From: Selaginella moellendorffii
Taxonomy: Eukaryota > Plantae > Lycopodiophyta
Assembly (NCBI RefSeq): GCF_000143415.4
Contig: NW_003314387.1
Coordinates: 124,001 to 188,000, forward strand
DNA length: 64,000 bases
Direction: 5' to 3'
The notes beneath the pieces were generated by a model that was not told where the DNA came from, made no database searches, and saw nothing but the letters and a program-made list of their open reading frames with translations. Position numbers and translations under genes: made by a program. Position 1 is the first letter of the stretch, and the number at the start of each line of letters is the position of its first letter. Of this stretch, positions 20,660 to 60,853 are shown piece by piece.

Positions 20660-20675
20660 GAGCTGTCTGTTTGGA
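20632..20675 (+). promoter_or_regulatory. -1 programmed ribosomal frameshift signal
   Basis: G GGA AAC heptamer in the gag frame (20632-20638), a 7-nt spacer, then a perfect 10-bp stem TCCAAACAGA/TCTGTTTGGA (20646-20655 / 20666-20675). pol lies in the -1 frame. Confidence 0.85.
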
Positions 20676-23600
20676 CTCCCCAAATAAGAATCACTTTTCT
20701 TCCTTATCAAGCTCCTCACCACCTTTCATCAAAGCCACCACCAATTCCCGCAACTTCCGCGTCCCATGTCTCCTTTCTTTCACCGGACAATCAGGACTCA
20801 AGGCTTTGGCGCTACTGGACTCGGGTGCAACTTCCTGCTTCATGGACACAGACTTTGCTGCCCGACATCACGTTCCTCTTTCTCCTACCATACGGGATCT
20901 GAGGGTTGAAGGCATCGGCGGGCATTTTGTGTCTCCATCTTCTGGACTTAGGGAAACGTTGCCCGTTCGAGTACACATCGGGTCCACCGTCACCGATATC
21001 GCCTTCAACATCATCAACAGCAAGTCTTCCTCTGTGGTGCTCGGTCTTCCTTGGTTCCAACTACATCAGCCTCAGATTTGTTGGAAGGACTTACAGCTCA
21101 TCTCTCCCACATCACCATCTCCCACGGCTTCCCCTGGTGTTCATCGAGTCCGAATCAGGAAAAGTTCCCTAAACTCAAGTCGGGGTTCTGTTCCTGACTC
21201 TACGCAGTTTTCATCCTCTTCTTTTTCCTCTCTTCCATCTTACACTGGACAGTATCCTCGTCTCATCATTCCATTTAGTCGTACCCCTCCTCCTATCTCC
21301 ACAATCACTATGAAAGAACTCCTTCATGAAGAACCTCTTTTTCTTTTTGCTTTGCATGTTTCTCCTGTCAGTCTTCCTGAGAAGTATCATGATTTTGGGG
21401 ATGTGTTTGACAAGAAAAAAGCTAGTGTACTGCCTGTTCATCGGCCTTATGATTGTCCCATTGATTTACAGGAAGGAGCGTCACCTCCGTGGGGGCCGAT
21501 CTACGGGTTATCCCCGTCCGAGCTTAAGGCCCTCAAAGAGTACGTGGATGAGAACCTTGCCTCGGGCTACATTCAGCATTCGCAGTCCCCGGCTGGAGTG
21601 CCTGTCTTCTTTGTCAAGAAGAAGGATGGGAGCTTGCGGCTAGTCATCGACTACCGAGGTTTGAACAAGGTGACTGTTCGGAACCGTTATCCGCTGCCCC
21701 TGATCTCGGACCTGTTGGAACACCTCGGCGGTGCCCGCTTCTTCACCAAGATCGACCTCCGTGGAGCATACAACCTGATCCGGATCCGGCCTGGTGATGA
21801 ATGGAAGACTGCGTTCCGAACCCGCTATGGCCACTTCGAGTACACTGTCATGCCATTTGGCTTGACAAATGCTCCAGCGGTTTTCCAACACATGGCGAAC
21901 GACGTTTTTCGGGAGTTTCTTGATCAGATGGTGATCGTCTACCTCGATGACATCCTCATCTACTCAAAAACTTAGGAGGAGCATGACGAACATGTTCGCA
22001 AGGTGCTAGCGAAGCTGCAAGAACACGGCCTATACGCGAAGCTTGAGAAATGTTCCTTTGATCAGCAGTCTGTGGAGTTCCTTGGGTACATTGTCACTTC
22101 TGAGGGTATCACGATGGATCCTGCTAAAGTCAAGACTATTCTCGAATGGGAGCCTCCACAATCAATGTCAGACGTTCAGGTTTTCCTTGGCTTCGCCAAC
22201 TTCTACCGCAAATTCATTGATCACTACTCTGACATTGTCCTTCCTCTCACACATCTCACTCGCAAGGATGTTCCCTTCTCTTGGTCTGCTGCTGCCTAGC
22301 AGGCCTTCGACACACTCAAGGCGGCCTTCAGTTCTGCTCCTGTCTTGATCCATGCTGATTCCTCACAACCTTTCTTCATCGAGGCTGATGCCTCCGACTT
22401 TGCCATTGGTGCTGTGCTATCTCAACTCGGAGCGGATCACGAACTTCATCCGGTCGCTTTCCATTCTCGGAAATTCCAGCCTGCGGAGATCAATTACGAA
22501 ATCCACGACAAGGAGCTTCTTGCCATCGTGGATTCCTTTGGAGAGTGGCGCCGTTTCTTGGAGGGGGCGAGCCATCAAACAACAGTCTGGACGGATCACA
22601 AAAATCTCGAGTACTTTGCCACTTCCCGAGTTTTAAGCCGTCGTCAAGCAAGGTGGGCACAATTCCTGAGTCGGTTTGACTTTGTTATCAAGTACAGACC
22701 TGGAAAGTTTCAAGGCCTTCCTGATGCTCTTTCAAGGCGCTCCTATCTCAGTCTCAGGCCTGGTAATCCTGCCTTCGATCAACAGGATCAAGTTATCCTC
22801 GGTCCTGATCGGCTTCAAGTTATGGCAATTTCCCTGGCCCCTCAGGACTCCTCCTTGATGGATGCAATCAGAAACGATCTTCAATCCGATGATCTTGCTA
22901 GCGACATTTTTCCCCATCTTCAGGTTGGACACCCAGTGACTCCCGACTGCCGGCGATTTGACGAGTTCGAGTTCTTAGATGGCTTATTGTACCGTGGGGA
23001 GCAGCTTTACGTTCCTGAAGGTGATGCTCGAAGGTTGATCCTGATGGCGTGCCACGATAGCCCGACTGCTGGTCACTTCGGCATTGCGAAAACCTATGAG
23101 CTAGTTGCACGGGACTTTTGGTGGCCTCACATGGACGACTACATCAAAGCTTTTGTTACCTCCTATGACACTTGTGCCCGGAATAAGGTACCTCGCCACC
23201 TTCCTTCAGGTTTGCTTCGTTCCCTTCCGGTCCCTTCAGGTCCTTGGGAATCCATCTCCATGGATTTCTTGAGTGATCTTCCGAGTTCTGGAGGCTTCAA
23301 CAGCATTTTAGTCGTGGTGGATCGCTTCACAAAGATGGCGCACTTCTTGCCATGTACCAAGGAGTTTTCGGGCGAGGACATGGCAAAACTGGTATTCAGG
23401 GAAATTTTCCGACTTCATGGGATTCCTACAGATGTGGTTTCGGATCGGGGGCCTCAGTTCATCTCTCATTTCTGGCAACGGTTTTTGCAGCTGCTTGGAG
23501 TGAAGGCCAACCTCTCTTCGGCATATCATCCTCAAACTGATGGGCAGTCCGAGCGAACGATTCAGACGTTGGAACAATTCTTGAGGTGCTTCATCAACTA

Positions 23601-24405
23601 TCATCAGGATAACTGGTTCGATATCCTTCCCCTTGCTGAGTTCTCCTATAACAACTCTGTTCACTCCTCTCTTTGAGTTTCCCCCTTCTTTGCGAACTCT
23701 GGCCGAAATCCCCGATTTAATCTCTCACTTCCTTCTCCATCTGAATCCTCTCGTTCAAATCCCCGCTCTGAATCATTTATCTCCAACCTTCAGGAAATCC
23801 ACAACTCCATCTCCTTCCACCTCCATCGTGCTCAGGAATCTCATAAAACATTTGCCAATGTCCATCGTCAGGATTGTCCCCCTTACAATATCGGGGATAA
23901 AGTCTGGCTCCTCAGGCGAAATATCTCCACCACCAGGCCCTGTCCAAAACTCGATTTCAAACGCCTTGGTCCTTTCCCTATCACTGCCATCATTAATCCT
24001 GTCACCTATCGCTTTGCACTTCCCTCCTCATATCAAATTCACCCCATTTTTCACTCCTCTCTCCTTGAGCCTTATATTCCCAGTCCTATTCCAAATCAGG
24101 TCATTCCTCCACCTCCACCAGTGCAGCTCGAGGATGGGTCTGAGTACGAGGTTCAGGACATCCTTGATTCCAAGATTTCACGATCTAAACTCTACTATCT
24201 GGTGGACTGGAAGGGTTATAGACCTGAGGAAAGCACTTGGGAACCTGCGGACAACCTGATTCATTCTCCTGACCTTGTTCAGGACTTCCACCGCCGCTAT
24301 CCTTCTCGTCCCAGTCCTCATTCTTTTTCTCCATCTCCCATCCCTCGCCGCTCATCTCATCCTCCTCTTCGTTCTCGTTCACATCCTCGTTCCACTCGTT
24401 CTTGA
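20638..24405 (+). pseudogene. pol: Pol (PR-RT-RNaseH-IN-chromodomain) with three in-frame nonsense codons
   Basis: LLDSGA, YLDD, EADASD, HHCC/DDE integrase and YEVQDILD..YLVDWKGY..STWEP all lie in one frame. Stops at 21973, 22297 and 23674. Confidence 0.95.
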
Positions 24406-27400
24406 GGAGGGGGTGCTGTCAGGAATCCCCCAATTCTTGCCACATTCCTGACTCTCGCCGGATTCCTGACCTGCAGACCACATTCCTGAATCTCGAGACA
24501 CTTCCCTATTCCTGACTCTCGAGACACTTCCCTATTCCTGACTCTCGAGACACTTCCCGATTCCTGAGTCTCGAGTCACATTCCTGATGATGATGTGGCG
24601 CCTCCTCGACCTCAGCTGTATTTAGGCCGTCCTCGATCCAAGAGTGGTGGAGCTTCATCAACCTATAGTATATATAGGTTAGCCTTGTTCCATTTCTCCA
24701 CAATCTGAATCAACACCAGTCTAAGGCCTCTTCTTTGTTTTCACTAGCTTTTTCTCTTTGTCTTTAGCATTTTCCAGTCTTGATCTTGTTGGGGGTCTTG
24801 ACAGTTTGAGGTTGAGATGTTGGTACTCGTACTATAGCTTGTCTATCAAGAGGTTGTGTACCAATATGAGTTCATCTCATAGTTTTCACTTTAGTTTCAA
24901 CTCAGTGTTGATTATGCATAGCTAGCCTTTTCAAGGCATGCTCAAAGCTAGTGGCTAAATGCATTAATGAGCTTATTACGGTTGAGTTGGATTTGAGTGG
25001 TCATTTAGTTATGTTTGTTCATGAACCTTTATTTTATACTTGAGGTATTACGTTCATGTTGGATGACTATATGACTTAATGATATGAGTTTAGTGTTTGG
25101 GACTTGTGAAGCAAGTTAAAGAATGATTGTTAGTTGCTTTGTGACTAGTGATTACTTGTAAACTTTGTCAAGCACTTGCTTTGCTCGATGATGATTTAGC
25201 AGTGATAGATTTGCTTTACCAGATGGTGTTGCGGAGGATTATGTCATTAGACTTACATGGTTTTTCCATGTTAGTATGTTGACTTTACCTCTATTGATAT
25301 CATTTGGTTGCGTTTATTCCGTAGTGTTAGATTTCATGGAGTCTTGGATGTGGTGATTCACTTCTTGATGATATATTATTTATAGCTGAGTATTGTTGGA
25401 GGATTGGTCTCAAATATTGAGTAAAGTATCTTTGACTTTGGTTAGCTTGGTTGTTAGAGAGTTTTGGGTAGTGATTCACTCTTGCTTTCTTTTATCTTTG
25501 TTTTGGTGTTGATGGTATTGAAGTGATGCCTTGTCACTGACAATATTGATGTTGAGATTTGAGTGAAATGAGATGTCTCTTCTTAAGATTGATATTGAGT
25601 TTCATTAGTCTTGATGAAGATAGTGTTGATGATTTGGCTATAAATTTGTGTTATTGACATTCGTGCATTTGCTAGTTAGCAATAATGTTGGTGTTCAAAT
25701 GAACTGAGTGAAAAGTTGAGTTAGTTGTGTTCTAAATAAGATTGCTTAATAGGGTTTGAGCTTTAGCTTTTCCTTGAAAAGTGATTTAATCATGGATTAT
25801 GCTATCTATATAAAAAGAAGAGTTAGTGATTGATATTGAAATGTTTGAATCCCGGTTGGATTTAAGTTAGGGATATATCAATCATTGATGATTCTTCTTG
25901 TACTTGTTATAAAGTGAGTTATGTCTTGCTATAGATGGATTCATAAAAGATCAATTTAGTGATCACTTGTTGAGTGTAACTTCAATATGCTTAGCTTTTG
26001 GATTGATGCAAATATGCTCTTCATTAGCTTTAGCATTATGAAGTTTGGCTTATAGATATGTTGAGAAGGATATTGTGGGTTGTACCATGATTTCTTCTTT
26101 AGCATTGAAGTCAGGTCATGTAAGATTTGTGATCATTGTTAAGCAAGATTTGGCTATAGGCTTCTTCAAATTTTTGGTTCCTTGAGTTTTTATGCTCATT
26201 ATTCCATTTGTTAGGAGTTGTTGGGGGAAGGCATTCTAACTCATAGCTTCAATGTTGAAGTTAGTAATTGTATCTAGCAACTATTGGTGATGATTGACTA
26301 TCATCTAAAATAATTGATTATCCTTATCAAAGGTTTTGCTTGATTATTGTTGATTTAGAGAGATTTGCTATTTTTCAGGATGGTGGATTCTTTCTTTGAT
26401 GATAATTATACATCTCTCTATTGATGGGATGATTGATGATATTTTATAATGGTTAGTTGTTTTCTTTGATTGCTTATGGCTTTTTGCAATACCACATGTT
26501 CTTTGTGGTTTTTTCTGAATTGGTCTCTTGGGTTTGAGACATCAATAGGATGTTGCTGACATTTGCTTAAGAAACTCTGGTTCCTTCGTATTGTTGACTG
26601 AGATCTAGTCAGATTGACTAGTGCAATACTTGGCATAAACAAGTGTTTGTTGGTCTTACCGCATTCATATTATTCTGTTGATTGTTGCTTGAGTTAGCTT
26701 TGATAGATTCGGATATTTTTTTTTTTGGGTGATACATTTGTGAGCATTTTGGTTGCCAGTCAATGATACTTTGTGTTCTTTGAGTTATCTTTGGTAAGCT
26801 ATTTGGTATACTGTCTGCAATCTTTGGTAGTTCAGTTTTATCATTGAGTTTCCTTGATAATACACTGGCTATTGAATTTTGTTGGATAGTGAATCCTATG
26901 TTTCCAACTATTGTGATCATGGTGGTTCTTTTACTCTAATACTGGTTTATCAGATGCTAACTTACTTGGAATACTTTTGTGTTCTAATCTAAGATTTATT
27001 CACTAATAATTAAGTCTCTTAAATATCATTGTTTCTGACTTTGATATTATCCATCTATTGATCTTTGAATTTGGGCTAGTATAGGCAGACTAGCTTTGGC
27101 ACTTCATATGTAGAGTAAAATCTTTAGTCATGGGGTAGCTACTGTCGACTAATCACATAACCCGGCTCTCTGTTGATGTTCCTTATTCCGTTCAAAGGGT
27201 ATGACTGTGTAAACAACCCTAACTGCCTATTTACAACAGTCTATCTAAACTTTACTGACAGGTTTGGTTTCTTTGCTTATGAGGGTTGGGGCCTCTAACT
27301 TCTCTCTCTATATCCCTACAGGTAGGGGTGTATCACACTTTTGTAAGCTGGGTGACACCTAGAGCAACAAAGGTGGCTGACTCCGTTGGTCATTTCCTTG

Positions 27401-27596: not shown

Positions 27597-28449
27597 TGTT
27601 GCGAATGTGACTTCAGGTATCGAAAGTTACCTGTCGGCCAGTCCTTATAAACACTCTTTCCTTACGGCCACGACGGTAGGAAGTCAGTTTTGCTGGACCC
27701 TTTATCAATCCCTCTTGTGCTAGTGGAGTTAACTAAGCATTTCGAGTGTACTTAGATTGAACAAGCATAAGGATAAAATTCCTACGTATTATTAGCTAAG
27801 CATACTTAGCCCGATAAGGAGTTCCCATTCTGACCCTAAACCCTAAGCCCAAATTCCATTTGACGCTAACGCAAGGATATGGGTACTCCACTAGCTAGGC
27901 CACCAATATGTTAAAATAGTGTAGACTTTGTTTGGCTCTGTTTTGCATGCTTGTCCTAGCATTGGGATACTAGGCACTCTAGGACTATTCCAAGTCCCTC
28001 CATGCTTCTTTTCCTTTGCTCCTTGGGCTGTACATTCGGGAGTTGTTCCGTGCTCTAGTGCTATTGCTCCTTGGCTCCATGCTTGGTAGTTTAGCACCAT
28101 TTCTCCGTCTAGTGGCCTAAGGCCCTAAAACTCAGGTTCCACTTCAGTGTCCTTTGGACACATGGCATGTGACATGTGGCATATGGAGGGTTTAAGTTCC
28201 ACTTCATGGTTATCCTATGGTAAAACACCATAAGATAAAGGGTGAAAACCACGTGTGCTACAATTTGGCACCATTCTTTCATTTATTGGCCCAAGGCCCT
28301 AAAACTCAGAATTTGTACCACTGTCTTTGGACACGTGGCATGTGGCACGTGGCATATGACATATGGCACATAAAGGGTTTGGGTTCTGCTTTGTGGTTAT
28401 CCTATGGTAAATCATATAGGATAAAGGGTAAAAACAACATGCATTATAT
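27597..28449 (+). mobile_element. LTR-B (internally deleted) preceded by a PPT and followed by a degenerate PBS
   Basis: PPT agagggggagag at 27585-27596, start TGTTGCGAATG, and tggtattagag immediately after the LTR end near 28451. Confidence 0.8.
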
Positions 28450-33651: not shown

Positions 33652-35021
33652 CACTTGCATCACAGTCCCGTCTCTCCAAGACTGGGCCATCCATCCACAA
33701 GTGATCTTTCCAGATCCACTCCTTAGCATCCTTAAGATGCCCATAGACATGGGGAATAACCTTCCCCAATATCCCTTTGTCAGTTCCTACCAAGTCCCTT
33801 TTCTGTCTATAGCCATGTTCGCCAACACTACCACTAGATCAAGGCTAACAAGCCCGGCCACTAAGTCCCATTGTCCTCTAGGACTTCCTCACCATGTGAC
33901 CGTATCCTTAGTCACTATACTAGAGGACTGCTCCTCCTCCTTTCCCCAGTTTAAGATTTCGGGACAACATTTTGGAACACCGTGGCCCTATGTGGGTACT
34001 CTCCCCACCTTCCACCTTTAAGTGCTCTAGCCATGGGCTTAGAGCAAGGTTCTGTTAAACCACGCCAAGTATCCAAGTAGGTAGTGCTTCCCACACTTGG
34101 ACTGGGAGTATCAGCCATTCGATCTCCCAGGGGAACTAGAGCCAGCTCTTGAATACTTCACTAAGCTACCCCGCTTGTCGATCTGTATTCACTCTAGCCT
34201 TGGACTTCCCAGTGGTTATCCCATCACCCAACATCTAAGTACAGCCTTCCTGGGCCAAATTGGCCTTTCCTAGCCAAACTGGCTCCATTGGAGTCCTCCC
34301 CCTTACTATACTTTTGGAGCTCACCAAACCCCCCAGGGTTTAGGAGATGAACACTTTGGGCTTTCACCCTCTTAGACTTGAACTCAAACTCAGACTCGGA
34401 CTCAGACTCGGACTCGGGCTCGGACTCGGGCTCGGGCTTGGTCTCGGTCTCGGTCCTAGCCTCGGTCTCGGTCTCGGTCCCGATCTTGGTCTCGGTCTCA
34501 GTCCCGGTCTCGGTCTCGGTCTCGACTTTGGACTCTATCTCGGGTCCTTCTCGGACTCCATCTCGGGTTCTATCTCAGGTCCATCTCAAACTCCATCTCG
34601 GATTCCATTTTGGACTCCATCTCAGTCCATCTCGGACTCCATCTCGGGTCCACCATCTCGGACTCCATCTCGGACTCCATCTCGGTCCATCTTGGACTCT
34701 ATCTCGAGTCCATCTCGGACTCCATCTCGGACTCTATCTCAGACTCCATCTCGGACTCCATCTCAGACTCCATCTCGGGTCCATCTCGGACTCTTCCATG
34801 TGTCATATGTTGGTCCTCTTGTGTCTCTTTTCTATAGCCTCACTTATTGTTGGCTTCATATTTGTTCCTCGAGCACTTCATCGGGAGTTCCACTCCCACT
34901 CTTGACCTTTCAAGTCGGAGCTTTTAGTCCAAACATGTTATGCTCATTTGGCTTTCGCTTCAGCCACTACCACGTGGCACCCTTTTGGCTCCACTTTGGG
35001 GCTTAGGATTTGTGTCTTACA
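33652..35021 (-). mobile_element. Partial LTR-A into which the LTR-C element inserted
   Basis: Collinear with 3008-4677 and ends tgtgtcttaca. Confidence 0.88.
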
Positions 35022-36404: not shown

Positions 36405-38133
36405 TGTGAGACACAAAATCCCTAGGCCCTAAAGTGGAGCCGGAAGGATGCCACGTGGTAGTGACCAAAGCGAAAGCCAAACGAGCGTAACATGTTTGGA
36501 CTAAAAGCTCCGACTTGAAAGGTCGAGAGCGGGAGTGGAATTCCCAACAAAGGGCTCGAGGAACAAGCACGAAGCAAGTAATAAGCGAGACTCCAAAAAG
36601 GGACCCAAAAGGACCAACACATGACATGTGGAAGTGTCCAAGATGGACCCGAGTTGGAGTTCAAGATGGAGTCCGAGGTGGAGTCCGAGGTGGAGTTCGA
36701 GATGGAGTCCGAGATGGACCGAGACGGAGTCCGAGATGGAGTCCGAGGTGGAGTTCGAGATGGAGTCTGAGATGGAGTCTGAAGTGGAGTCCAAGATGGA
36801 GTCCGAGATGGACTCAGACAGAGTCCGAGATGGACTCAGACAGAGTCCGAGATGGAGTCCGAGATGGACTCAGACAGAGTCCGAGATGGAGTCCGAGATG
36901 GACCGAGACGGAGTCCGAGATGGAGTCCGAGATGGACTGAGACAAAGTCCGAGATGGAGTCCGAGATGGACCCAAGATGGAATCCGAGATGGAGTCCGAG
37001 AAGGACCCGAGATGGAGTTCGAGGTCGAGACCGAGACCGGGACCGAGACCGGGACCAAGACCGAGACCGAGATTGAGACCGAGACTGAGGCGGAGGTCGA
37101 GACCGAGCAGAGTCCGAGTCCGAATTCGAGTCTGAGAGGGTGAAAGCCCAAAGCATTCATCTCCCAGACTCTGGGGGGTTTGGTGAGCTCCAAAAGTATA
37201 GTAAGGGGGAGGACTGCAGTGGAGCCAGTTTGGCCAGGAAAGGCCAGTTTGGCCCAGGAAGGCCAGACCCAGTGTTGGGTGATGAACTGACCACTAGGAA
37301 GTCCAAGATTAGAGTGAATACGGACTGACAAGCGGGGTAGCCTGGTGAAGTGTTCAAGAGCCGGCTCTAGTTCCCCTGGGAGATCGACTGGCCGATGCTC
37401 CCAGTCCAAGTGTGGGTGGCACTACCTACTTGGATACCAGGCATGGCTCAACGGAACCTCGCTCTAAGCCCATGGCTAGAGCACCTAAAGGCAGAAGGTG
37501 GGGAGAGTACCCACAGGGCTTGTGTAGGCCCATGGTATTCTGAAATGTTGTCCCGGAGTCCCAAATGGGGGAAAGGAGGAGGAGCAATCCTCTAGTGTAG
37601 TGACTAAGGATACAGTCACATGGTGAGGAAGTCCCAGAGGACTATGGGACTTAGTAGTCGGGCCTGTGGGCCTTGATCTAGTGGCAGTGTCGGCGAACAT
37701 GGCCATGGACAGAAAAGGGATTTGGTAGGAACTGACAAAGGGATATTGAGGAAGGCTATTCCCCATGTTTGTAGACATCCTAAGGATGCTAAGGAGTGGA
37801 TCTAGGTTGACCACTCGTGGACGGATGGCTCAGTCTTGGAGAGATGGGATTGTGATGTAAGTGGTATTGGACCACAAGTGCGGCAAAGGTAAATGGGCAT
37901 GGCCTTAGCGTAACGGGCCGATATGTCAATGGTACCTTTGGGTGTTGGTCTTGGGACTGGACACGTGGAGCACTTGGACCAAGTGCAAGGGATGAGTGAC
38001 ATGGATGCCATTCTCGGGACTAGCAAGTCCCAAGTCCCGAATTGGACTTAAGGAGGTTGTGAATGAGACTCCTCCAAGTGGTCAGAGGTGTGGTTAAGTG
38101 ACTAAAGTAGAATGGAAAAATTAGTCGCTTACA
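36405..38133 (+). mobile_element. Solo LTR-A
   Basis: TGTGAGAC...GCTTACA termini; TSD GTTTC/GTTCC (one transition). Confidence 0.92.
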
Positions 38134-42665: not shown

Positions 42666-43260
42666 TGTAAGCTCATGAGTTTGGACTTCTCGGGAGGTCA
42701 CCTAGCCCAGTACTATTCAAACCCAAGGACGTTTAACCCCAAATATCCCAAGACCCTTAACCGATTGGAAAAGGGGGTGCACTCTTGTTCATGGGCCCTT
42801 TCCCTCTATATTTGAACCCCAATGGATCGTTTCTCGAGTCGTTCCCTTTGGTTGCTTACAATCCACCATGCTTCCCTGCAAGTTCACGCCTTCGTGAACG
42901 GAAGCTGAGAGCCACAACTCTCCTGAGAGCCCCGCTCTCTTGACACCCTACCCCTCGGGTCGAGCCCAGCGGGAGCAAACTGGACTAGCCAGATGTCAAT
43001 CAACATGTGGTGCGATTCCCCTAGCCAACCAACAGAGTCGGACTCGAGACCTCTTTGATACCAAATGTAAGCTCATGAGTTTGGATTTCTCGGGATGTCA
43101 CCCAGCCCAGTACTATTCAAACCCAAGGACGCTTAACCCCAAATATCCCAAGACCCTTAACCGATTAAAAAAGGGGGTGCACTCTTGTTCATGGGCCCTT
43201 TCCCTTTATATTTGAACCCCAATGGATCGTTTCTCGAGTCGTTCCCTTTGGTTGCTTACA
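42666..43260 (-). mobile_element. Complete Cassandra-type TRIM (595 bp) with 5S rRNA-derived LTRs
   Basis: 195-bp LTRs at 42666-42860 and 43066-43260 (TGTAAGC...GCTTACA), perfect TSD TAGGT and PBS tggtatcaaag. The LTR minus strand reads gttaagcgtccttgggtttgaatagtactgggctgggtgac, matching 5S box A, intermediate element and box C. Confidence 0.93.
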
Positions 43261-46200
43261 TAGGTCAAGTATATTTAACTAATAGCATTTAGAAATTCAT
43301 CTAATCAAGTGCATATGTGATGACCAATTTTTTAATTAGCTTGGGTGGAGAACATAAAGGGAATCAGTAGTATCAACCTCCTATTGTCATGGCAGTAAGG
43401 AGAGAGTGTTTGTAAGGACTAGCCGACAAATTTCTTTTGATACCCAAAGTTACATTAGCGATACTGTTGGCCCCACTTGCTTGCTTTTTGGATTTACTCT
43501 TCTTAAACTCTAAGGACTTATTTTTAGAGAAACTTGTTTTGAATTTCTTTTCTCTCAATTGAATCCCTTACTAAATATAGACCCAAACCTAGTTAAATTC
43601 CCTTTTGCAAGTTCTTATTAAAATGCATCTTGATAGCCACATCTAGCTTCTTTATAATTTGTTGGGTTATAGTGTATCACCTTTTCTTGAGCCTACGTCT
43701 TGCAATCTTGAGATAAAGGTATAAAACTATTACAAATGTGATTGTAGGTATAGAAAGTTACTTGTTAATGAGTTCTTTCAGATATTCTTTCTTTACTACC
43801 ATGACAGTAGAAGACTAATATAGTTGATTCCCTTTCTCAACCCCTTTTGCTCAAGTGTTAGTAAATTGGGATTAACATTTGTACTTAGCTAAATAGATAT
43901 AAAGTATTAGGAACTCCTATGTGTTTCTTGTTGAATATCTTTCCTATATTGCACAAGCGATTCAATCATACCTCAAGGTTGATGGACTAAGACAATTCGG
44001 TTTGCAGGTCTAGCATTGGATGTGTCACATTTGTTTCTTGTTTATTCAAAAAATGCCCTCCACTTTAGTGTCTTAGAGGTACCCTTCTTCCTTCATTTGC
44101 TTGTCCAGCTACTGAATCTCTGCATAAATTTCATCTCTCTATGGACGTGGCATGATAGAAGAAAAGTCCAATGACCTATAAACTCACTTCTCTCTCTCTA
44201 TGAGACTCACACAAATGGGTGCAAAAGAGCCATCTAGGCAAGTTTCTTACTCTCAAGTCTGATATTCATTTTGCTGGTGTTTATATTACAAAACAGACAA
44301 ATAATAACATCAATTATTAATTTTGATTTCCCGTCTCTACACAATGCATTAATGAAGCTAAGAACTATTATTTCCCTCAAAAAGGCCTGGAAGAACCAAA
44401 CTAAAGCACAAACTGCTGGTTGGTTTTTTTTTTTTTTTTTTGCTAGCAGCAAGGTTGTTTTTTTGTAGAGACAAATCAATCTGGAATCCTAGATTTTCCT
44501 ACAGACACAATCAAGGCTGTGTAAGAAATGTTGTGTAAGGGATTAGAGCATAGATTGTGGCACTTCTATCACTGACTTAAAGGTATACAACCATTTTTCC
44601 AAATGGTCTTTACCACATATTGAATTTAGTTGCATTGTAAGAGGCTACAGAAAGAAACTTCAAACCATTACCATTTCAAAAGAAATGACTTCACTTTCAC
44701 TCCATATTTCCCAATGCCCTTTTATGAAATGTAATGGATAAGCACCTATCTGTAGAAACTTTGAAAGATAAACCACATTCCTAGCAAATTAGAACCTACT
44801 TTAATCTCTTTGATAAAGGGTAAACCAAAATAATTGTACTCTTTTCAAACAAATATACTCTTTTCTTATAAATCAAGTCATTGTTCTTCTCCTTGGTGGA
44901 GCACTTCTTTCTCTTAATACACACAAACTTTACATTATACTTAACAATTGCTTTATGCTTGAATGTGAGTGGACAATTTTTTTCTCATATAGTGTAGTGG
45001 AGAATCCTCTAATCAATAATTTCCATAGTTTGAGTAAAATGATGCATAGACTCAAAACAATTTTTGCAAATGAGAAATATAAAAGAGTTACTTTTATTAA
45101 TAATTATGAAAAATTAACACATGCTACTAACATCAGAATGAGAAACAAATGTAAAAGGATTTAATGGGTGAAATAGATGTTTTTTTTACTTAATAAATCC
45201 ATATGCCAAATTATATAAAATGTTAAAAGACATTTAAGAGAAACTACACAGTGAAACTTCAAATTCGACACAAATATATGGGTTTGTAAAGTAGTGATGT
45301 ATGCTAGCTGGGATTCTAGCTCCACTGGAAAATATAATTTAAAATAAATATGAAAAAATTCCAGAATAAAATTTAATTGTTTTAGCAAAAGTTTTAGTGA
45401 TTCGTTTAAATATTACAATAATTTTTTAAATTGGTATTTTTAAATAGTTTATAGTATAGTTGTAAAATTTTATATGAGTAATGGAGAGAGTAGTTTTTAG
45501 AATAATGTTTAGTGCTAATAAGTTTAAAGCATATTAAGAGCATAAAAATAAGACTAATACTATTTTAAAACCTTTTATGGGAAATAAGAAAACAGAATAA
45601 ACCGAATCTAAAATATATAATTGGGAATACTATACTTCTTCACTATCCTTTTATTTAAAGTTTCCAATTGAATGATACACTTTGACTATGTATTTTGAAA
45701 TAATAAGATCCACCATCACTCATCTCTTCAATATTATCACCCATGGATGCAAAGGTTAATACACTATTGTAACTTGATGGTTGTGGATGCGGTGGAGAGT
45801 ATAATCCAGGGGACAATGTCAACAACAAGGAGGACATGGATGCTTGAGTTATGCTCCTGGGACCAAATCCCTGCTCAATTGATCTCGCCAGCGATGCTGC
45901 CCGCTAGTGCTCAATGTATTTCTTCGTCTTGCACACATAGAGCAAGAAATTTTTGCACTAAATCATGATTTGCTGAAGGAAAATATCATTGTAAAAACTT
46001 TAAGGAATATAAAATATTGGCTTCATAAATTAATTGCAATTCCATATACAATTGGCAAATGCTTAAACCAACCTTGAAATTATAATTTTGAACTGAAACA
46101 AGGAATTTCAAAAGACATTATAGTTCATAAAGCACCATTACAACAAACAATACATTTACCCATTGACAATCCTTCAAGACCACTGTTAATTCAAAATTTT

Positions 46201-46896: not shown

Positions 46897-49081
46897 TCAA
46901 TGGAGAAATTCAGTGTCTTGAGAATTATAAGAGTACCAAAGAAACATCACTGGAGAGGACACGTTGTAAGAAGTCCCTGCGTGAAACCCCTCGTCGATGC
47001 CAAGTTCTTCGACAGCAAGGCTTTGATCCGTGCTAAGCCACCAGCGTTTGAGAAGAAAACCATGCCTAGCGGCGCTGGAAGTTATCTGCGCTTCGTCGAT
47101 CCTCCTGGCCAGATGACACAGCAGCAGGCTTGGCTTGGAGCTCGCAGCACTAGAAAGCAGCTGCTTGGCGGTCTCGAACAGCGCGGGCAGCGCCTCTTCA
47201 ACGTAAGTCACGTCTGTTCCAAAGATGAACTCGAATCCTCCGGAGAAACGGCCTAGAACCGAGGAGATCTCGCCACAGTCACCCCATTGCAGCCTCTGGC
47301 AGGATATCTTGTCCACAGGGAAAGTTTGAGCGTTGGCTTGGATGTTTTGCTGGAGCAAGTCGAGAGCTTGAGTGTCCGCGTCCGTGGTGAGGACATGCCT
47401 TGCGGAGAGCGACGCTAGCAACGAGCAGAGGCCGACGCATCCACTGCCGAGTTCTAGCACGGTCTTGTTTCGGAGAAGAGATGGAAATCGTAGCAGCAGC
47501 TGGGACATTGCCAGGGCAGATTCCCACAGCATTAGTCCTGTGCTCTTGCATGTGTGCTGGTGGCTGCGGGATATCGACTTTGCAACGATACGATAGTCCC
47601 CAAGCTCGACCGCGGTCTCCTGGAACGAGAAACTAGATAGTACCACTTTTGATTCGAGTGTTACGAACCAACCTCAGGAACTGGTGCTTCTATGAACAAG
47701 TCCTCTCCCAGGCCATCTAGCGAGCACGATGCATCTTCTCCAGGTTCTTCTTTGAGAACAAAGGCGCCTTGAATCCATTTCCTGAAAGAGAAGTACACGA
47801 ACAAGTTCAAGTATCGTCGTAGGAAAGAAAGAGAGCACTGTGAAACCTGTCCATAGCAAGGCCCTTGGATCGGTTCTCCACGACCTTGCAAACGACGTCG
47901 AGCGCCTCCACTGCGAAGCCTTCTTTCATAAAGAGCTCGGAGAGGAAGTCTTCGGAAAAATAAAACGCGCGCTAAAGCCTCATGTCAGATGCGTGCAAAA
48001 AACAAATCAATATCAATGTTACCATACCGTGCCATCTCCACGCACGAAAAAATTCTCACTAATCTGCTGGTCCTTCTTTCTGAATCTTTCCTGCATATCA
48101 AGAAGGATATCAGTGTCTCCCAAGCCAAACTAGTTCCAGGCGCTCACCTCGGACAGATCTCCTACCGCATAATCCCTGAGAAGAACATGTCCACCAGGCT
48201 GCACAGCACTGTGTCAAAAACTTCACGTTTCAAGTTTTATCGACCTTAAGCACTCTCTTGATGTTTGCCAAGACACCAGACATTCGATCCGGAGATACTG
48301 CTGAAAGCATAAACACCTGCAAATAGAAAACCAAGCCTCAATACTTCATTGTTGATCGCTCAAAAACTTTACCAGGGTCACAATGTCAGCTGACGAAGAA
48401 GGCATGTGTTCCGTCAATTGTTCCGATGTCACGTCACAAACAAAAGCATTGGCCCGACTGTCGATATAGTCGCTGTGTGCCTAAGACCAAAAGGAGAGAA
48501 GTTCCTGTAGTGGAAAAGAACCAAAGTAGCCGAACCTTCACAATCTCAATCGCTCGAGGAGAGAAATCGCATCCATGCACAAATATGTGGGGGTACTCCG
48601 CCAGCAAAGGAAAAATCGTGTTGCCTACACCACAGCCAACCTACTAAAGAGTAATCGAGAATGGATGAAGTAAACCACTCCATACCTCAAGCACAACTCC
48701 AGCGCTAGAGGCATTTGGGGTACGCGATGAATTCTAGAAAGAAAAAAATGCCAAGAGATTGAGAAAAAAAAAGGAGAACCTACACTCTAGAAACTTACCA
48801 AGTTCGTGAAATAGTTCCCCCATTCTTTGTCCAAGTAATGTCGATCCTTGAAAAACTATTGCCCTGTTAGCGAGACCGGAAGAAAGAATAGAGAGAAAAG
48901 AGAGCCATTACTCTGTTCTCATTGCGCTTGTAGAACTTGTCCCAGTAGCGCATTGCCTCCCTTTCATACTTGTCTGGAAGAAATCGAGCGATTGATCACA
49001 GGACAATCGATCGAGCTGCCATAGATCCATACCTCGCCAGAACGCCGAGACGAGCTGCGACTTGGTGGGATAGATCTGCAT
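46897..49081 (-). CDS. Multi-exon dual-domain SAM methyltransferase (METTL2/6-like tRNA m3C domain plus Methyltransf_16-type domain)
   Basis: Exons give [16 protein letters not shown]|[21 protein letters not shown]|[13 protein letters not shown]...LE|[12 protein letters not shown]. The last exon gives [10 protein letters not shown]...VLELGSG. Short introns. Span given; exon boundaries are approximate. Confidence 0.88.
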
Positions 49082-49159: not shown

Positions 49160-51190
49160 ATGCTAGCTGGGGGAAGGAAATATGGAGAGACAAGCACCAC
49201 GGATCATTCTCACTGGGCGGCTCTTCTTCGCGAATGCAAGAGCTTGCCCCAGGCGAAGAAGCTCCACGCCGAGATCATCGATCACGGGCTCTCTAGCAGC
49301 ACCTATCTCGCCAATCTTCTCATCCAGCTCTATGGCCGATGCGGCAGCGTCGCCGACGCATCCAGCGTCTTCTCCTCCATGGCCGGGAATCGCAACATCT
49401 TCTCCTGGAACATCATGTTTACCGTGTTTGCCCAGCAAGGGGATCTTGGCCGCGCCAGGGATCTCTTCGATCGCATGCCCGATCGAAACGTCGTGTCCTG
49501 GAACGCGATGCTGGCGTGCTACGCGCAGTCGAGCCAGATCGCCCAGGCGGAGCTCCTCTTCCGCAAGATGCCGCAGAGGAGCCTCGCGTCTTGGAATTCG
49601 ATGATCGCCGCCTATGCCCAGAACGATCTCCCGGAGGAGGCGCTGGAGATCTTCACGCGCATGGATCTCGAGGGGATTGCCCCGGACAAGATCACGTTCG
49701 TTAGCGCCGTGAATGCGTGCTCCAGCCTGAAATCTCTCTACCACGGCAAGATCGCGCGGATGAAGATCCACGAATCGGGGCTGGAATCGGATGTTTCGGT
49801 GGGCAATGTTCTCATCACGATGTATGGGAGGTGTGGATCCATCCAGGACGCGAGAGATTGCTTTGATAAGATCAAGGATCCAAGCGTGGTCTCGTGGACA
49901 GCGCTCCTCACAGCATATGCCCAAAGGGGGGATTTGCAAGAGGCGGCTATGGTGTTCGATCGAATGCCACTGAAGAACGAAGTCTCCTGGACCGCGATGA
50001 TCACAGCGCACACCCAATTCGGCCACGCCCAGCAAGCGATCCTTCTCTTCCGGCGAATGGATCTCGACGGCGTCTATCCGGACGAGGTGACGGTGGTGAG
50101 CGCGATCGATGCTTGCGCCCATCAGGGCGATCTTGCCATGGGAATCGCGGTCCACAGCGATCTTGCGAGCAGCGGCGGGATCGAGATCGAGGATGCCGCG
50201 GTGGGGAATTCGCTGATCAATCTCTACGGCAAGTGTCGCATGGCGGAGGAAGCTCTGGAAGTCTTCCAATCCATGCGCTGCCGCAAGAACGTCGTCTCCT
50301 GGACCGCGATCGTCGCCGCGCTCGCCCAGAACAAGCGCCTGGATCAAGCCAGGGATCTCTTCGATCGGATGCCGATCCGGAACGTAGTCTCCTGGAACGC
50401 GATCATCACCGGCTACCTCGACGACGATCGCCCGCCCGACGCCATCGATCTCTACTACCGGATGCGCCAGGAGGGCGTGCCCGCGGATCGAGTGACATTC
50501 GTGGCGATGCTCGAGGCCGCCGCCTCCATCACGAATCTCGTCCTTGGCCGAGTCATCCATAGCCACACCCAAGAAGAAGGGATCGAGGGCGATATTCTCG
50601 TCGGTACCGCGCTGTTAAGCATGTACGGCCGGTGTGGCTGCACTGAGATGGCCGTTCGTACGTTCCACGGTATGCCGCCGCGGCACGACGTCGTCGTGTG
50701 GAGCGCGCTCATTGCCTCGTTTTCACACTGTGGAAATGGCGGGAAAGCACTGGAGGTGTTCCACGGCATGCTGCTCGACGGCATACTGCCCAACGGCGTC
50801 ACGCTTGTTAGCGTGCTCTCCGCGTGTAGCCACATTGGCGCCGTGGAAAAGGGCTGGGGTTTCCTGGCGTCCATGAGCTCGGATTTTGGGATCCAACCCT
50901 CGGAGGATCACTTGGCCTGCGCTGTGGATCTGCTCGGCCGATCGGGGCGCCTGGCCGAGGCCGAGGAGTTTCTGCTCGATAAGGATGAAGAAGGGGGCGG
51001 CCGCGGCTGGAAATCGCTCCTCGGCTCCTGCCAGGGAGATCTCGGCCGCGCGTCACGAATCGCGGAGCTAGTCCTGAGGCTGGATCCGGCGGATTGTTCG
51101 TCGCACGTCACGATCTCCAACATTCTCGCGTCGGCATCGCCGGCTCTAGGGTTTAATCCAGGAGGAGGGAAAAACGTGGCAATCTTTTAG
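49160..51190 (+). CDS. PLS-class pentatricopeptide repeat protein with partial E domain and no DYW (putative organellar RNA-editing factor)
   Basis: Intronless 676-aa ORF with repeated RNVVSWNAM, LITMYGRCG and VLSACSH motifs, then CAVDLLGRSGRL..AEE. Confidence 0.95.
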   Translation: MLAGGRKYGETSTTDHSHWAALLRECKSLPQAKKLHAEIIDHGLSSSTYLANLLIQLYGRCGSVADASSVFSSMAGNRNIFSWNIMFTVFAQQGDLGRARDLFDRMPDRNVVSWNAMLACYAQSSQIAQAELLFRKMPQRSLASWNSMIAAYAQNDLPEEALEIFTRMDLEGIAPDKITFVSAVNACSSLKSLYHGKIARMKIHESGLESDVSVGNVLITMYGRCGSIQDARDCFDKIKDPSVVSWTALLTAYAQRGDLQEAAMVFDRMPLKNEVSWTAMITAHTQFGHAQQAILLFRRMDLDGVYPDEVTVVSAIDACAHQGDLAMGIAVHSDLASSGGIEIEDAAVGNSLINLYGKCRMAEEALEVFQSMRCRKNVVSWTAIVAALAQNKRLDQARDLFDRMPIRNVVSWNAIITGYLDDDRPPDAIDLYYRMRQEGVPADRVTFVAMLEAAASITNLVLGRVIHSHTQEEGIEGDILVGTALLSMYGRCGCTEMAVRTFHGMPPRHDVVVWSALIASFSHCGNGGKALEVFHGMLLDGILPNGVTLVSVLSACSHIGAVEKGWGFLASMSSDFGIQPSEDHLACAVDLLGRSGRLAEAEEFLLDKDEEGGGRGWKSLLGSCQGDLGRASRIAELVLRLDPADCSSHVTISNILASASPALGFNPGGGKNVAIF

Positions 51191-54705: not shown

Positions 54706-57298
54706 TGTAGCATACGTGGTTTTCACCTTTTATCTTATGGTGATTTACCATAGGATAACCACAAAATAGAATCTAAACCTTTTATATGCCACATGTCACA
54801 AGCCATGTGCACATGCCATGTGTCCAAGGACAGCAAAATGAAACCCAAGTTTCAAGGCCTTGGGCCACTAAACGAAGGAGTAGAGCTAAAACTCCCAATT
54901 TTGCAACTAAAGAGCAAGGGAATTGAAGCACGAAGTGACTTTTGTGCATTCAACCCAAACAATAAAGGGACAAAAGCACAAAACGATATAGGAATAGTTC
55001 TAGAGTATTCAATATTCCAATGCTAAGACCAACACATAAAATGGAGCCAAACTGTAAGCGACAAAATTTTCCATTTTACAATAGTCACTTAACCAAACCT
55101 CCAACCACTTGAAGGAGTCTCTCTCACAACCTCCATAAATTCTATTTTAGACTTAGGGCTTGCTAGCCCTAAGAATGGCATCCATGCCACTCAACCTTTA
55201 CATTTAGTCCAAGTGCTACAATGTCCAATCCTATGATTGACACCCAAATGTATGTTATGCTAAAGCCATGCCCATTCACCCTTGTCACACTGGTGATCCA
55301 ACACCACCTACATCATAGTCCCGACCCTAAAAAATTAAGCCATCCGTCCATGAATGATCATCTTAAATCCACTCTTTAGCATCCTTAGGATGCCCACAAA
55401 TATGGGGGACAGCCTTCCCCAATATCTCTTTTTTGGTCCCCACCAAGTCCCTTTTTGTCCATAGCTGTGTTCGCTAACATTGCCATTGAGTCAAAGCCTA
55501 TAGACCCAACCACTAAATCCCATTGTCCTTTGGCACTTCCTCACTATAGGACCATATCCTTGGTCACTAAACCAAAGGATTGCTCCTCTTCCTTTTCACA
55601 ATCTGGGACTTTGGGATAACATTTCGGAACACCGTGGCCCTACATGAGCCTCATGGGTACTTTCCCCAACTTTCACCTTTGGGTGCTCTAACCATGGGGC
55701 TAGAGTGAAGTTCTGTTGAGCCACACTAGGTATCCAAATAAGTAGTGTTATCCACACTTGGACTGGGAGTATTAACCATTCAATCTCCTAAGGGAACTAG
55801 AGCTGGCTCTTGAACAATTCACTAAAATACCCCGCTTTTAAGTTTGTATTCATTCTAGCCTTGGATTCCTCAGTGGATATATCATCACCCAACATATGGG
55901 CATAACCTTCCTAGGTCATATTGGCCTTTCCTTGCCAAACTGACTCCATTGGGGTCCAACCCCCACACTCTCCCTATTATACTTTTGGAACCCCCTACAG
56001 CCTTTGCTGGGGGACAATCGCTTTGGGCTTTCACCCAACAGCTTGTATTAGTATTCAAACTCAAACTCGGATTCGGACTCGGACTCGGACTCGAACTCGA
56101 TTTCGGCCTCAGACTCAGTTGCGAACTTGGACTCGGTCTCAATCTCGGTCTCAATCTTGGACTCCATCTCGAACTATGTCTCGAGTCCATCTCAAACTCC
56201 ATCTTAGGTCCATCTTGGACTCCATCATGGGTCTATCTCAGACTACATCTCGGGTCCATCTTGGACTCCATCTTGGACTTCATCTCGACTCCATCTCATA
56301 CTCCATCTCGAGTTCATCTCAGACTCTATTTCGGGTCCATCTCAGATTCTATCTCAGGTCCATCTCAACACTTCCACATATCATGTGTTGGTCCTCTTGT
56401 GTCCCTTTTCTAAAGACTTATTTATTGCTTGCTTCGAGCTCGTTTCTTGAGCCCTTCTTTGGGAGTTCCACTCCCACTTTTGACTTTTCAAGTTAGAACT
56501 TTTAGTCCAAACATGTTACACTCATTTGGCTTTTGCTTTGGCCATTACCATATGACACCCTTTTGGCTCCACTTTGGGGCTTAAGAATTTGTGTCTCACA
56601 CAAAAAGAGTTTAATGCTATTTTAGCATACTAATGGCTTAATACAAGGATATATGTACTCTACCAGCTAATATGGTATAGAACTTAGGCTTACACCCAAG
56701 TTGGATGCAGAACAAGTACACACAAGTGGAAGCTATTTTATACCTCAAGTTGCCCCCTCCCCCCTTAGCAGAATGCATGCTTTAGGTTTTCACTATTGGT
56801 ACCAAGAGTTAGTCTTCGGGATAAACTTGAAACTTATAGAATATAGAATGGTGTTAAATTGTGAATTTGGATACAGAGCCAACACCATTGTGTTTAGGAC
56901 AATTTCTAGATATGAAAAATTAGCAAATCTAAACACTTTCTTTAAATAGCCAATAGAACCGAATAAAACCAATATATAGAGCATAATAGCAAGGGTATTT
57001 GGAGAATATAGTAAGCTATCATCTGGCAATATTAAGGGATTAGTATCAATATATGAGGGTTTTTGAAAGCTAGTGGAAAACAAAGCAAAAGAGAACTAAA
57101 AGTCAGGTCAAGTATGCTTAAAAATAAACACATAGAAATTCCTATGTTATGTTCATTTGGCTAAGTACAAATGCTAAGACTAATTTACTAACACTTAAAT
57201 AAGAAGGGTTGGAAAGGGAATCAACAATACTAAGGAAAGAATATTTGAAATGACTAGTTGATATGTAACTTTTGATACTTGCAGCCATATTCACAACA
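54706..57298 (-). mobile_element. Solo LTR-B (about 1.04 kb net) containing an LTR-A solo
   Basis: TGTAGC...CAACA termini; TSD GATAT/AATAT. The flanks rejoin the family-D pol. Confidence 0.85.
55053..56600 (-). mobile_element. Solo LTR-A
   Basis: TGTAAGCG...CTCACA termini; TSD CAAAC/CAAAA. Confidence 0.9.
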
Positions 57299-58057
57299 AA
57301 TATTGAGAGCGTAAATACCAAAATAGTAAGTCATCAACAAATTATATAAGATTCTCAAACCCATCGTAAAGCCTTCAAATCCATGACCCAATCTTTTGAG
57401 CCTCACAAACCTCATCATGAAAAGGTAAATCTTGTTTTACTCCTTGTAGACACTAAACATCAAATACAACAATAGTCAATAGCATGGAATTTTAATCCAA
57501 AACATTCACAGATGTTGGAATAATAGGTTCATTAGAAATATGAAAAGAGAGCAAAAAAGGAAAAGGAGCTCAAGAAAGGGCATCAGCATCAGCTATAGAA
57601 CTCCCTGAGTAATGAATAACATCAAAATTATATATCTGAAGCTTCAAAGCCCACTAAGCAATATAACCAACTGAGTTCTTCTGCTTCAATAATAAAGTAA
57701 TTGCAGCATGATAATCTTCTAGTAAAGTCTAGGACCTATATAGATATGCATGAAATTTCTCAAAACCCTAAATTACTACTAAACACTTATTCTTTATTAT
57801 AGAGTAATTCACCTCCACTGGTTGTAATGTATAGTTGATATATGCAATGGGATAGTGTTGACCATGCACACTCAAACTCTTTTGCATCAACACACCTCCA
57901 AGACAAATATCAAAAACATCCATGTGCAAAATAAAAGGTAGAATGAAAATTGGAGGAGTCATCAATAGGTCTTTGAGATTTGTAAATACCCACTCACAAT
58001 CCATAAACCAAATGAAGAAAAAATTAATGACTTCAGCAACACTTGCAACAGTGCAAT

Positions 58058-59053
58058 TGTAAACTCTTGAGTTTAGACTTTCTGGTAGGTCACCCAACTC
58101 AGCACTACTCAAACCCAAGAAGTGCACTTTTATTCATGGGCTATTTCACTCTATATTTGTCACGAATGTGACTTCAGGTATCGAAAGATACTTGTCGGCC
58201 AATCCTTACGGACACTCTTTCTTTACTGCCATAACAGCAGGAGGTCAGTACAGTTGGATCCCTTTAGTAGCCCCTCTTGTGCTAGTGGAGTTAACTAGGC
58301 ATTTCGAGTGTACATAGACCGAATGAGCATAAAGATGAAATTTCTACATGCTATTAGCTAAGTATACTAACTAAGTATACATAACTATTCTTAACTCGGG
58401 GTAAGTATACTTAGCTAATAGCACATAGGAATTCCATCCTTATGCACATCCGATTTAAGTACACTCGAAATGCCCAGTTAACTCCACTAGTACAAGAGGG
58501 GCTACTAAAGGGATCCAACTGTACCGACCTCCTGCCGTTATGGCAGTAAGGAAAGAGTGTCCATAAGGACTGGCCGACAAGTATCTTTCGATACCCAAAG
58601 TCACATTCGCGACAATATTGAACCTCTATAGATCGTTTTTTAAGTCGTTCTCTTTGGTTGTTTACAATCCACCACATTTCTCTGCAAGTTCACGCCTCCA
58701 TGAATAACAGTTGAGAGCCATAGCTCTTCCGAGAGCTCTGCTCTCTTGACAATCTAGCTCAGTTGGAGCAAATTAGACATGCTAGATGTCAATCAACATG
58801 TGCTGTGATTCCCCTATCCAACTAACAAAGTCTGACCCAAGACCCCTCTGATACCAAATATAAACTCTTGAGTTTGGACTTCCTAATAGGTCATCTAGCC
58901 TAGTACTACTCAAACTTAAGAACACGTAACTTTAAGTATCCGAAGACCCTTTAACCGATTGAAAAAAGAGATGCACTCTTATTTATAGGCCCTTTCCCTC
59001 TATATTGAACCCCTGTAAATAATTTCTTGAGTTGTTGTCTTTGGTTGCTTACA
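58058..59053 (-). mobile_element. Second, older Cassandra-type TRIM interrupted by a fold-back element
   Basis: Two 5S-containing LTRs, internal region homologous to 42861-43065, PBS ctctgatacca near 58846, TSD GCAAT/GCAGT. Confidence 0.88.
58158..58614. mobile_element. Fold-back element made of two inverted 211-bp LTR-B 5' ends
   Basis: Arms 58158-58368 and 58404-58614 are reverse complements. TG...CA termini and a perfect TSD ATATT. Confidence 0.9.
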
Positions 59054-59086: not shown

Positions 59087-60853
59087 TGTGAGACACAAAA
59101 TCCCTAGGCCCCAAAGTGGAGCTGGAAAGGGTGCCACGTGGTAGTGGCCGAAGTGAAAGCTAAACGAGTGTAACACGTTTGGACTAAAAGCTTTGACTTG
59201 GAAGGCCGAGAGCGGGAGTGGAATGTGAGACACAAAATCCCTAGGCCCCAAAGTGGAGCTAGAAATGGTGCCACGTGGTAGTGGCCGAAGTGAAAGCCAA
59301 ACAAGCGTAACACGTTTGGACTAAAAGCTCCGACTTGAAAGGTCAAGAGTGGGAGTGGAACTCCCAACAAAGTGCTCGAGGAACAAGCACGAAGCGAGCA
59401 ATAAGCGAGGCTCCAAAAGGGGACCCAAAAAGGACTAACACATGACACGTGGAAGTGTCTGGGATGGAGTCCGAGACGGACCCTAGTTGGAGTCTGAGAT
59501 GGACCCAAAGTGGAGTCCGATATGGAGTCCGAAGTGGAGTCCGAGATGGAGTCCGATATGGAGTCCGAGATGGACCCGAAGTGGAGTCCGATATGGAGTC
59601 CGAAGTGGAGTCTGAGATGGAGTCCGATATGGAGTCCGAGATGGACCTGAAGTGGAGTCCGATATGGAGTCCGAGGTGGACCGAGACGGGGTCCGAGATG
59701 GACCCGAGATGGAGTCCGAGATGGACCCAAGATGGAGTCCGAGATGGAGTCCGAGATGGAACCGAGGCCGAGGCTGAGACCGAGGCCGAGACTGAGACCG
59801 AGACCGAGTCCGAGTCCGAAACCAGGACTGAGACTGAGTCCGAGTCCGAGTTCAAGCCCGAGTCCGAGTCCGAATACTAATACAGGCAGTTGGGTGAAAG
59901 CCCAAAACGATCGTCCCCCAGGGAAGGGGGAGGACTGCAGTGGAGCCAGTTTGGCCAGGAAAGGCCAGTTTGGCCCAGGAAGGCCAGACCCAGTGTTGGG
60001 TGAGGAGCTGACCACTGGGAAGTCCAAGACTAGAGTGAACATGGACCGACAAGCGGGGTAGCTTGGTGAAGTGTTCAAGAGCCAGCTCTAGTTCCCCCGG
60101 GAGATCGACTGGCCGATGCTCCCAGTCCAAGTGTGGGTGGCACTACCTACTTGGATACTAGGCGTGGCTCAACGGAACCTCACTCTAAGCCCATGGCTAG
60201 AGCACCTAAAGGCGAAAGGTGGGGAGAGTACCCAGGTGGCTCGCGTAAGGCCACGGTGTTTCGAAATGTTGTCCCAAAGGCCTAGACTGTGGAAAGGAAG
60301 AGGAGCAGTCCCCTGGGGTAGTGACCAAGGACACAGTCGTGTGGTGAGGAAGTCCCAGAGGACCATGGGACTTAGTGGTCAGGCCTGTGGGCCTCGATCC
60401 AGTGGCAGTGTTGGCAAACACGGCCAGGGGCAGAAAGGGACTTGGTAGGAACTGACAAAGGGACTTTGGGGAAGGTGATTCCCCAGGTCTGTGGGCATCC
60501 TAAGGATGCTAAGGAGTGGATCCAGGATGACCACTCGTGGACAGATGGCCCAGTCCTGGAGAGACGGGATAGTGATGCAAGTGGTATTGGACCACTAGTG
60601 CAGCAAAGGTGAATGGGCATGGCCTTAGCGTAACGGGCCGAGATGTCAGTGGTACCTTTGGGTGTCGGTCTTGGGACCAGACACGTGGAGCACTTGGACC
60701 AGGTGTAAGTGTGGAGTGGCATGGATGCCATTCTTGGGGCTAGCAAATCCCAAGTCCTGAATTGGACTGATGGAGGTTGTGAATGAGACTCCTCCAAGTG
60801 GTCGGAGGTGTGGTTAAGTGACTAAAGTAGAATGGAAAATTTAGTCGCTTACA
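59087..60853 (+). mobile_element. Solo LTR-A with its first 137 bp duplicated
   Basis: TGTGAGAC at both 59087 and 59224; ends GCTTACA; perfect TSD ATTGC. Confidence 0.92.

Follow-up and report, generated by a model that had tools for sequence, protein, structure and literature searches.

Results

Genes and retroelements of the window

The window, that is, the whole 64-kb stretch of DNA that was analysed, carries blocks of retroelements with ordinary genes between them. The latter include a lysine-methyltransferase-like open reading frame (Methyltransf_16) on the minus strand at 46900-47646 and a 676-aa PPR-repeat protein encoded on the plus strand at 49160-51187. A young Ty3/gypsy element occupies positions 19205-24803. 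Its LTRs are 99.5% identical, it is flanked by the target-site duplication (TSD) GTTTG, and its gag, protease, reverse transcriptase, RNase H and integrase reading frames are largely open, which indicates that integrase-competent elements were recently active in the region.

A family of 1.4-1.9-kb LTRs (TGTAAGCGAC...GTGTCTCACA) that internally contain long 12-bp tandem repeats is also present in seven copies, on the plus strand at 2739-4677, 11417-12879, 33652-35021 and 55053-56600 and on the minus strand at 16931-18279, 36405-38133 and 59224-60853. At least three of the seven are solo LTRs with 5-bp duplications (GCATG/GCATG, CAAAC/CAAAA and GAAAC/GGAAC). Most of these LTRs lie inside LTRs of the family that also provided the arms of the fold-back described below, perhaps because they insert there preferentially, or simply because the nesting is dense. 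Converging pairs of this 1.4-1.9-kb repeat were considered as larger fold-backs and rejected, since each copy is a solo LTR in its own right, with a separate 5-bp duplication.

Structure of the fold-back unit

Positions 58158-58614 form a 457-bp inverted repeat with arms of 211-215 nt that are 90% complementary and a centre of 29-35 nt. It is the longest short-range inverted repeat of the 64-kb window. The repeat finder placed the arms at 58157-58371 and 58401-58615, each 215 nt long, 90% complementary and 29 nt apart; cutting both arms at AGTATACT instead divides the unit into 211 + 35 + 211 = 457 bp. The termini read TGTCAC...GCGACA, so that the unit starts with TGT and ends with ACA. It is non-coding, and its only open reading frames end at the palindrome.

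The left arm (58158-58371, plus strand) corresponds to positions 1 to about 214 of an LTR of Ty3/gypsy type and begins with the U3 start TGTCAC. The centre (58372-58400) is assigned to the minus strand and holds a third copy of the core TAAGTATAC. The right arm (58401-58614, minus strand) is the same LTR start in inverted orientation, reading TGTCGC on its own strand. Aligned with eight copies of the family, both outer ends of the unit (TGTCAC and TGTCGC) coincide with base 1 of the LTR. In place of a pair of direct LTRs, we found inverted arms whose outer ends are both U3 starts, and the U5 end is absent from the unit. Neither a primer binding site (PBS) nor a polypurine tract (PPT) is found in the 29-35 nt centre, which consists of LTR sequence with palindrome repeats, and the R region is likewise absent from the unit.

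The source LTR family

The closest ordinary LTR, which we call LTR-B, lies on the plus strand at 27597-28447 and is 83% identical to each arm over the first ~215 nt. Measured against 27597-27814, the identities of the two arms are 83.0% and 82.6%, compared with 90% between the arms themselves. The polypurine tract agagggggagag directly precedes the LTR at 27597. The LTR ends at about 28447, and two bases further on is TGGTATTAGAG, a primer site of the tRNA-iMet type. With a PPT before it and a PBS after it, the copy at 27597 is a genuine LTR. Six more diverged copies of the family all begin at the same TGT, and in total eight copies in the window share this first base. Another copy, at 38395 on the minus strand, comes after scraps of open reading frames whose matches to an integrase SH3 domain and to a chromodomain stay under the Pfam cut-offs and are in the correct order. 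This points to a Ty3/gypsy family of chromovirus-like affinity.

The first-pass annotation had described the unit as an inverted repeat of two LTR left ends, and it had taken the arms for true 5' (U3) ends. The repeat finder and the division into 211 + 35 + 211 bp agree with the former statement, and the 83% match to an LTR that possesses both PPT and PBS, along with the shared TGT start, agrees with the latter.

Two further features of this family were observed. The LTR at 27597-28447 carries a 175-bp internal tandem duplication (28090-28255 and 28264-28441). Its combination of a PPT upstream and a PBS downstream also implies that it is common to two internal regions, either in a tandem array (LTR-internal-LTR-internal) or in a recombinant. 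Elsewhere, at 43355-43462 (minus strand) and 43728-43857 (plus strand), two starts of the LTR-B family point apart with about 265 bp between them, an arrangement opposite to that of the fold-back.

The host element

The fold-back is enclosed in a Cassandra-like terminal-repeat element (TRIM) with 5S-like LTRs on the minus strand at 58058-59053, comprising a 3' LTR (58058-58666) that contains the insert and a 5' LTR (58855-59053). Without the insert, the host measures ~540 bp, with LTRs of ~150-200 bp that are 81.6% identical and an internal region of 188 bp. Its primer site, TGGTATCAGAGG, is a PBS of the tRNA-iMet type near 58838-58849 and adjoins the 5' LTR, and its own TSD is GCAAT/GCAGT. 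The host thus has short direct LTRs, a tRNA-iMet PBS, a tiny internal region and a TSD, which is the layout of a Cassandra TRIM. It sits inside a decayed gypsy pol region, of which an RNase H scrap is found at 57771-58127.

Better-preserved paralogous LTRs match the full Rfam 5S_rRNA model with 26-27 bits, compared with a gathering score of 38, and the host copy itself has a deletion of roughly 48 bp within the 5S-like segment. Over the whole window, Rfam gave zero matches at gathering thresholds. As the 5S match stays below the gathering score, 'Cassandra-type' appears a reasonable label for the host rather than a formal assignment. The best 5S_rRNA matches of the window (26-27 bits) belong to a second Cassandra-like TRIM at 42666-43260, whose LTRs are 96% identical and spaced by 400 bp. 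The right end of this second element adjoins a truncated, inverted start of the LTR-B family (43268-43462).

Target-site duplication

The fold-back is flanked by the pentamer ATATT on both sides (58153-58157 and 58615-58619), and we compared this site with uninterrupted copies of the host family. In the sister 5' LTR of this host (58841...), the site reads CTCTATATTGAACC and includes ATATT once. The three other copies of the host family (42648.., 43048.. and 9751..) read TATATTTGAAC or TATATTTAAAC, and the duplication is absent from them. When the insert and one ATATT were deleted in silico, a 14-nt identity with the sister 5' LTR was regained. The chance of a 5/5 match between the flanks is ~0.0014 at the local base composition. 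Since the uninterrupted copies of the host repeat hold this stretch only once, ATATT represents a true 5-bp target duplication. The right flank of the fold-back carries on the host LTR sequence and is not an inverted version of the left flank. The fold-back entered the Cassandra-type LTR in a single insertion that duplicated 5 bp of the target. These comparisons, with the TGT...ACA ends, uphold the earlier proposal of an integrase-type TSD and of entry in a single step.

Other LTR elements in the window likewise have 5-bp duplications. A solo LTR of the arm family (54706-57298), with another solo LTR nested inside it, is flanked by GATAT/AATAT, which indicates that the arm family makes duplications of this length. 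The end of this LTR at 57298 (..CAATATT), which resembles the flank of the fold-back, was tried as a duplicated junction or as part of a second Cassandra element and discarded, as it showed no real homology past ATATTGA and is an ordinary solo LTR end.

The centre and the palindrome

The place where the arms meet is homologous to a quasi-palindrome of the ordinary LTR-B (GCTAAGCATACTTAGC, 27795-27810, plus strand), in accordance with a turn at a palindromic motif as suggested in the first-pass annotation. Within 50 bp, the centre of the fold-back contains the core TAAGTATAC three times. In the orientation of the right arm, LTR-like sequence runs on beyond the palindrome (..CTAAGTATACTTAC CCCGAGTTAAGAATAG..) and is followed by GTATACTTAG, which nearly repeats the palindrome's second half. 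On the minus strand, the spacer is probably an extension of the right arm into about LTR positions 215-243. When we tested to which arm the spacer belongs, one relative only (c10527) gave a clear signal (z about 3), and the similarity was modest.

We then considered the fold of a strand that ends at GTATACTTAG. In the predicted structure, its last 10 nt pair with CTAAGTATAC, giving a 10-bp stem with a 24-nt loop. The stem is weak, with a predicted energy of -4.8 kcal/mol, which 9 of 200 shuffled sequences equalled. According to this model, a strand folded at GTATACTTAG would be a usable self-primer. Extension from the fold predicts the observed unit minus 13 bases, the actual centre containing GTATACTTAG[T/C]TA in tandem. 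The 13 extra bases could be accounted for either by a later 13-bp slippage or by a nearly blunt junction, from about position 243 to position 214, and the nearly blunt junction looks more like end-joining.

Divergence and age of the arms

Between the arms, 21 of 214 sites differ (K2P 0.108). Transitions account for 18 of these and transversions for 3, so most of the mismatches are indeed transitions, as had been noted at first sight. Many of the differences fall on CpG or CHG, and two CpG sites are mutated in opposite directions between the arms. Polarisation with the LTR copies of the window, which are noisy outgroups at 65-83% identity, places derived states in both arms. The arms are equally far from LTR-B and nearest to each other, which argues for a single source for both. 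The transition bias and the derived changes in both arms suggest that they were identical at birth and then underwent a long, methylation-driven decay. Furthermore, the insert is younger than its host, as the host LTR pair is 81.6% identical and the arms are 90% identical. The divergence of the arms marks the fold-back as old and genuine.

That the palindrome was falsely created during assembly or cloning is exceedingly unlikely. Palindromes are prone to chimeric reads, but the arms of such an artefact would be identical, whereas here a tenth of their sites differ, mostly by transitions of the methylation type, around an asymmetric centre. As a separate observation, after a rough polarisation C-to-T-type changes numbered ~14 on the minus and 4 on the plus genomic strand across the two arms together, figures that are small and depend on noisy outgroups.

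Hairpin RNA potential

If transcribed, the fold-back is predicted to form an RNA hairpin of -337 kcal/mol (z = -38), and the strength of this hairpin follows from the inverted repeat itself. The first-pass annotation saw in such an RNA a possible source of siRNAs against the LTR-B family, a role that is hypothetical. At the centre of the unit, matches to Rfam miRNA families were all far below threshold (46.8 compared with 139.7 bits) and of the generic long-hairpin type.

Discussion

Origin of the fold-back

We consider the fold-back to be probably a dead-end by-product of LTR-retrotransposon replication, in which a plus strand turned back on itself and the resulting DNA with two U3 ends was integrated once. 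Synthesis of the plus strand would start exactly at base 1 of U3, right after the polypurine tract. About 200-245 nt further on, the strand would meet the palindromic motif (CTAAGTATACTTAG, with the near-repeat GTATACTTAG 30 nt beyond). There, self-pairing or pairing to another nascent plus strand of identical sequence could allow its extension back to base 1. Because a simple hairpin has one end, either the hairpin strand would have to be copied, or two plus strands would have to anneal via the self-complementary motif and be extended. Each strand of the resulting short, palindromic duplex would run from U3 base 1 to a terminal CA, so that the duplex offers two U3 attachment ends. The integrase of the arm family, or a related one, could then insert the duplex by a single concerted reaction of its two ends with the target. 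Afterwards, each arm would have decayed by about 5%, mostly through transitions of the methyl-cytosine type.

The individual steps have precedents. Integrases carry out concerted integration with two identical ends in vitro, as in the prototype foamy virus intasome with two U5 oligonucleotides, and reverse transcriptases self-prime on hairpins. The snap-back synthesis at the palindrome that had been put forward initially is plausible: the predicted 10-nt pairing speaks for it, while the 13 extra bases in the centre and the single integrase end of a hairpin do not fit it as it was worded. The account is also weakened by the fact that the unit is a single, decayed copy and that the nearest ordinary LTR is just 83% identical, which makes it a distant guide to the progenitor at the turn. 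As the unit has no PBS, PPT or R, it could not be copied by the normal route. With one copy within the 64-kb window, we take it as a single insertion rather than a family.

Alternative explanations

The two U3 ends might instead have come from separate cDNAs of the same element, joined to one target and healed at their inner ends by resection and end-joining near the palindrome. In vitro, the standard product of concerted integration joins ends that come from two donor molecules. The inner breakpoints are unequal (about 214 and about 243), with at most 1-2 nt shared if the downstream GTATACTTAG is native to the LTR, and a junction at this place would be expected, as inverted copies share microhomology at palindromes only. 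Both cDNAs, each several kb in length, would nevertheless have to shrink to within 30 nt of one LTR position, a near-symmetry which the turning back of a single strand gives automatically, and we regard the two-molecule origin as unlikely. Two independent insertions in opposite orientation at one 5-bp site, or some other rearrangement, followed by a large deletion, would make ATATT in part a matter of target preference. A preference of this kind is hinted at by the AT-rich pentamer that flanks a solo LTR of the family (GATAT/AATAT) and resembles ATATT. This course of events demands two hits on the same five bases and a near-symmetric loss of almost the whole of both elements, and the flanks would be expected to match by chance in little more than one case in a thousand (~0.0014). 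Had break repair with fold-back produced the rearrangement, an inverted copy of the left flank would be expected on the right, where in fact the host LTR continues. Such origins appear very unlikely.

Other explanations make the unit a mobile element in its own right. Taken further, the MITE-like nature ascribed to it in the first-pass annotation would make it a non-autonomous, retroelement-derived unit that propagates through repeated integrase action on its two U3 ends, and both the ends and the duplication suit the needs of an integrase. There is no second fold-back in the 64 kb, however, despite eight copies of the parent LTR start, and a unit without PBS, PPT and R has no known RNA-mediated route of propagation. 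Excision of DNA is not known from retro-type integrases. We therefore find repeated movement improbable. A non-autonomous DNA transposon of the Ginger or GingerRoot type, with terminal inverted repeats (TIRs) derived from an LTR end by chance, is a still more remote candidate, and we give it hardly any weight. Such elements share with the fold-back integrase-related chemistry, TG...CA termini (Ginger), long TIRs (100-150 bp in GingerRoot) and, for GingerRoot, presence in lycophytes (PMC6839031). The TSD of 5 bp found here differs from those of GingerRoot (6 bp, rarely 7-8 bp), Ginger2 (6 bp) and Ginger1 (4 bp) (PMC6839031). Moreover, Ginger and GingerRoot elements are multi-copy and encode or need a transposase, whereas the fold-back is present in a single copy in the 64-kb window, its arms are LTR ends, matching an LTR with PPT and PBS at 83% identity for more than 200 nt, and no such transposase was found among the open reading frames scanned in the window.

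Comparison with known systems

If the fold-back did arise from a turned-back plus strand, close counterparts include reactions known in vitro. Integration of U3/U3 or U5/U5 substrates likewise involves two like CA ends, one target and an enzyme-specific stagger, here of 5 bp. Such experiments use designed DNA, whereas the fold-back would be a fossil in a natural genome, formed from a substrate of accidental origin. Hairpin-primed second-strand cDNA synthesis is classical, and retroviral strong-stop DNA self-primes. These cases of snap-back synthesis by reverse transcriptase share with the proposed pathway a 3' end that folds onto an upstream complement and is extended back. Their products normally go no further and never become integrated, in contrast to the product considered here, which would have gained two usable ends and been inserted.

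Like TRIMs and Cassandra elements, the fold-back is very small and non-coding, with a borrowed integrase and a 5-bp duplication. TRIMs replicate by way of RNA and possess direct LTRs along with a PBS and a PPT, whereas the fold-back consists of inverted half-LTRs and has no priming sites. A further parallel is maize Mu killer, an inverted duplication of the terminal region of a transposon that likewise yields a long hairpin RNA if transcribed. Mu killer is transcribed and silences MuDR; the hairpin RNA of the fold-back is a prediction from its DNA sequence. Full-text literature searches found no published natural fold-back of LTR ends with a target duplication, which is not proof of absence.

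Significance

The fold-back would constitute a natural record of two events that are usually seen in the test tube, namely nascent retroelement DNA turning at a palindrome and an integrase accepting two U3 ends. Its small size allows the turn to be read to the base. As a single copy without signs of activity, it is a curiosity. On a wider and much more speculative view, to which we give only a small chance of being correct, integrases in this lycophyte may recurrently insert any small DNA with two U3 ends, with palindromes near LTR starts as hot spots, so that a distinct and recurring class of fold-backs would produce read-through hairpin RNAs that help to silence the parent family. If such inserts are frequent in the genome, hairpin loci against a retrotransposon family could arise in one step from the family's own replication errors.
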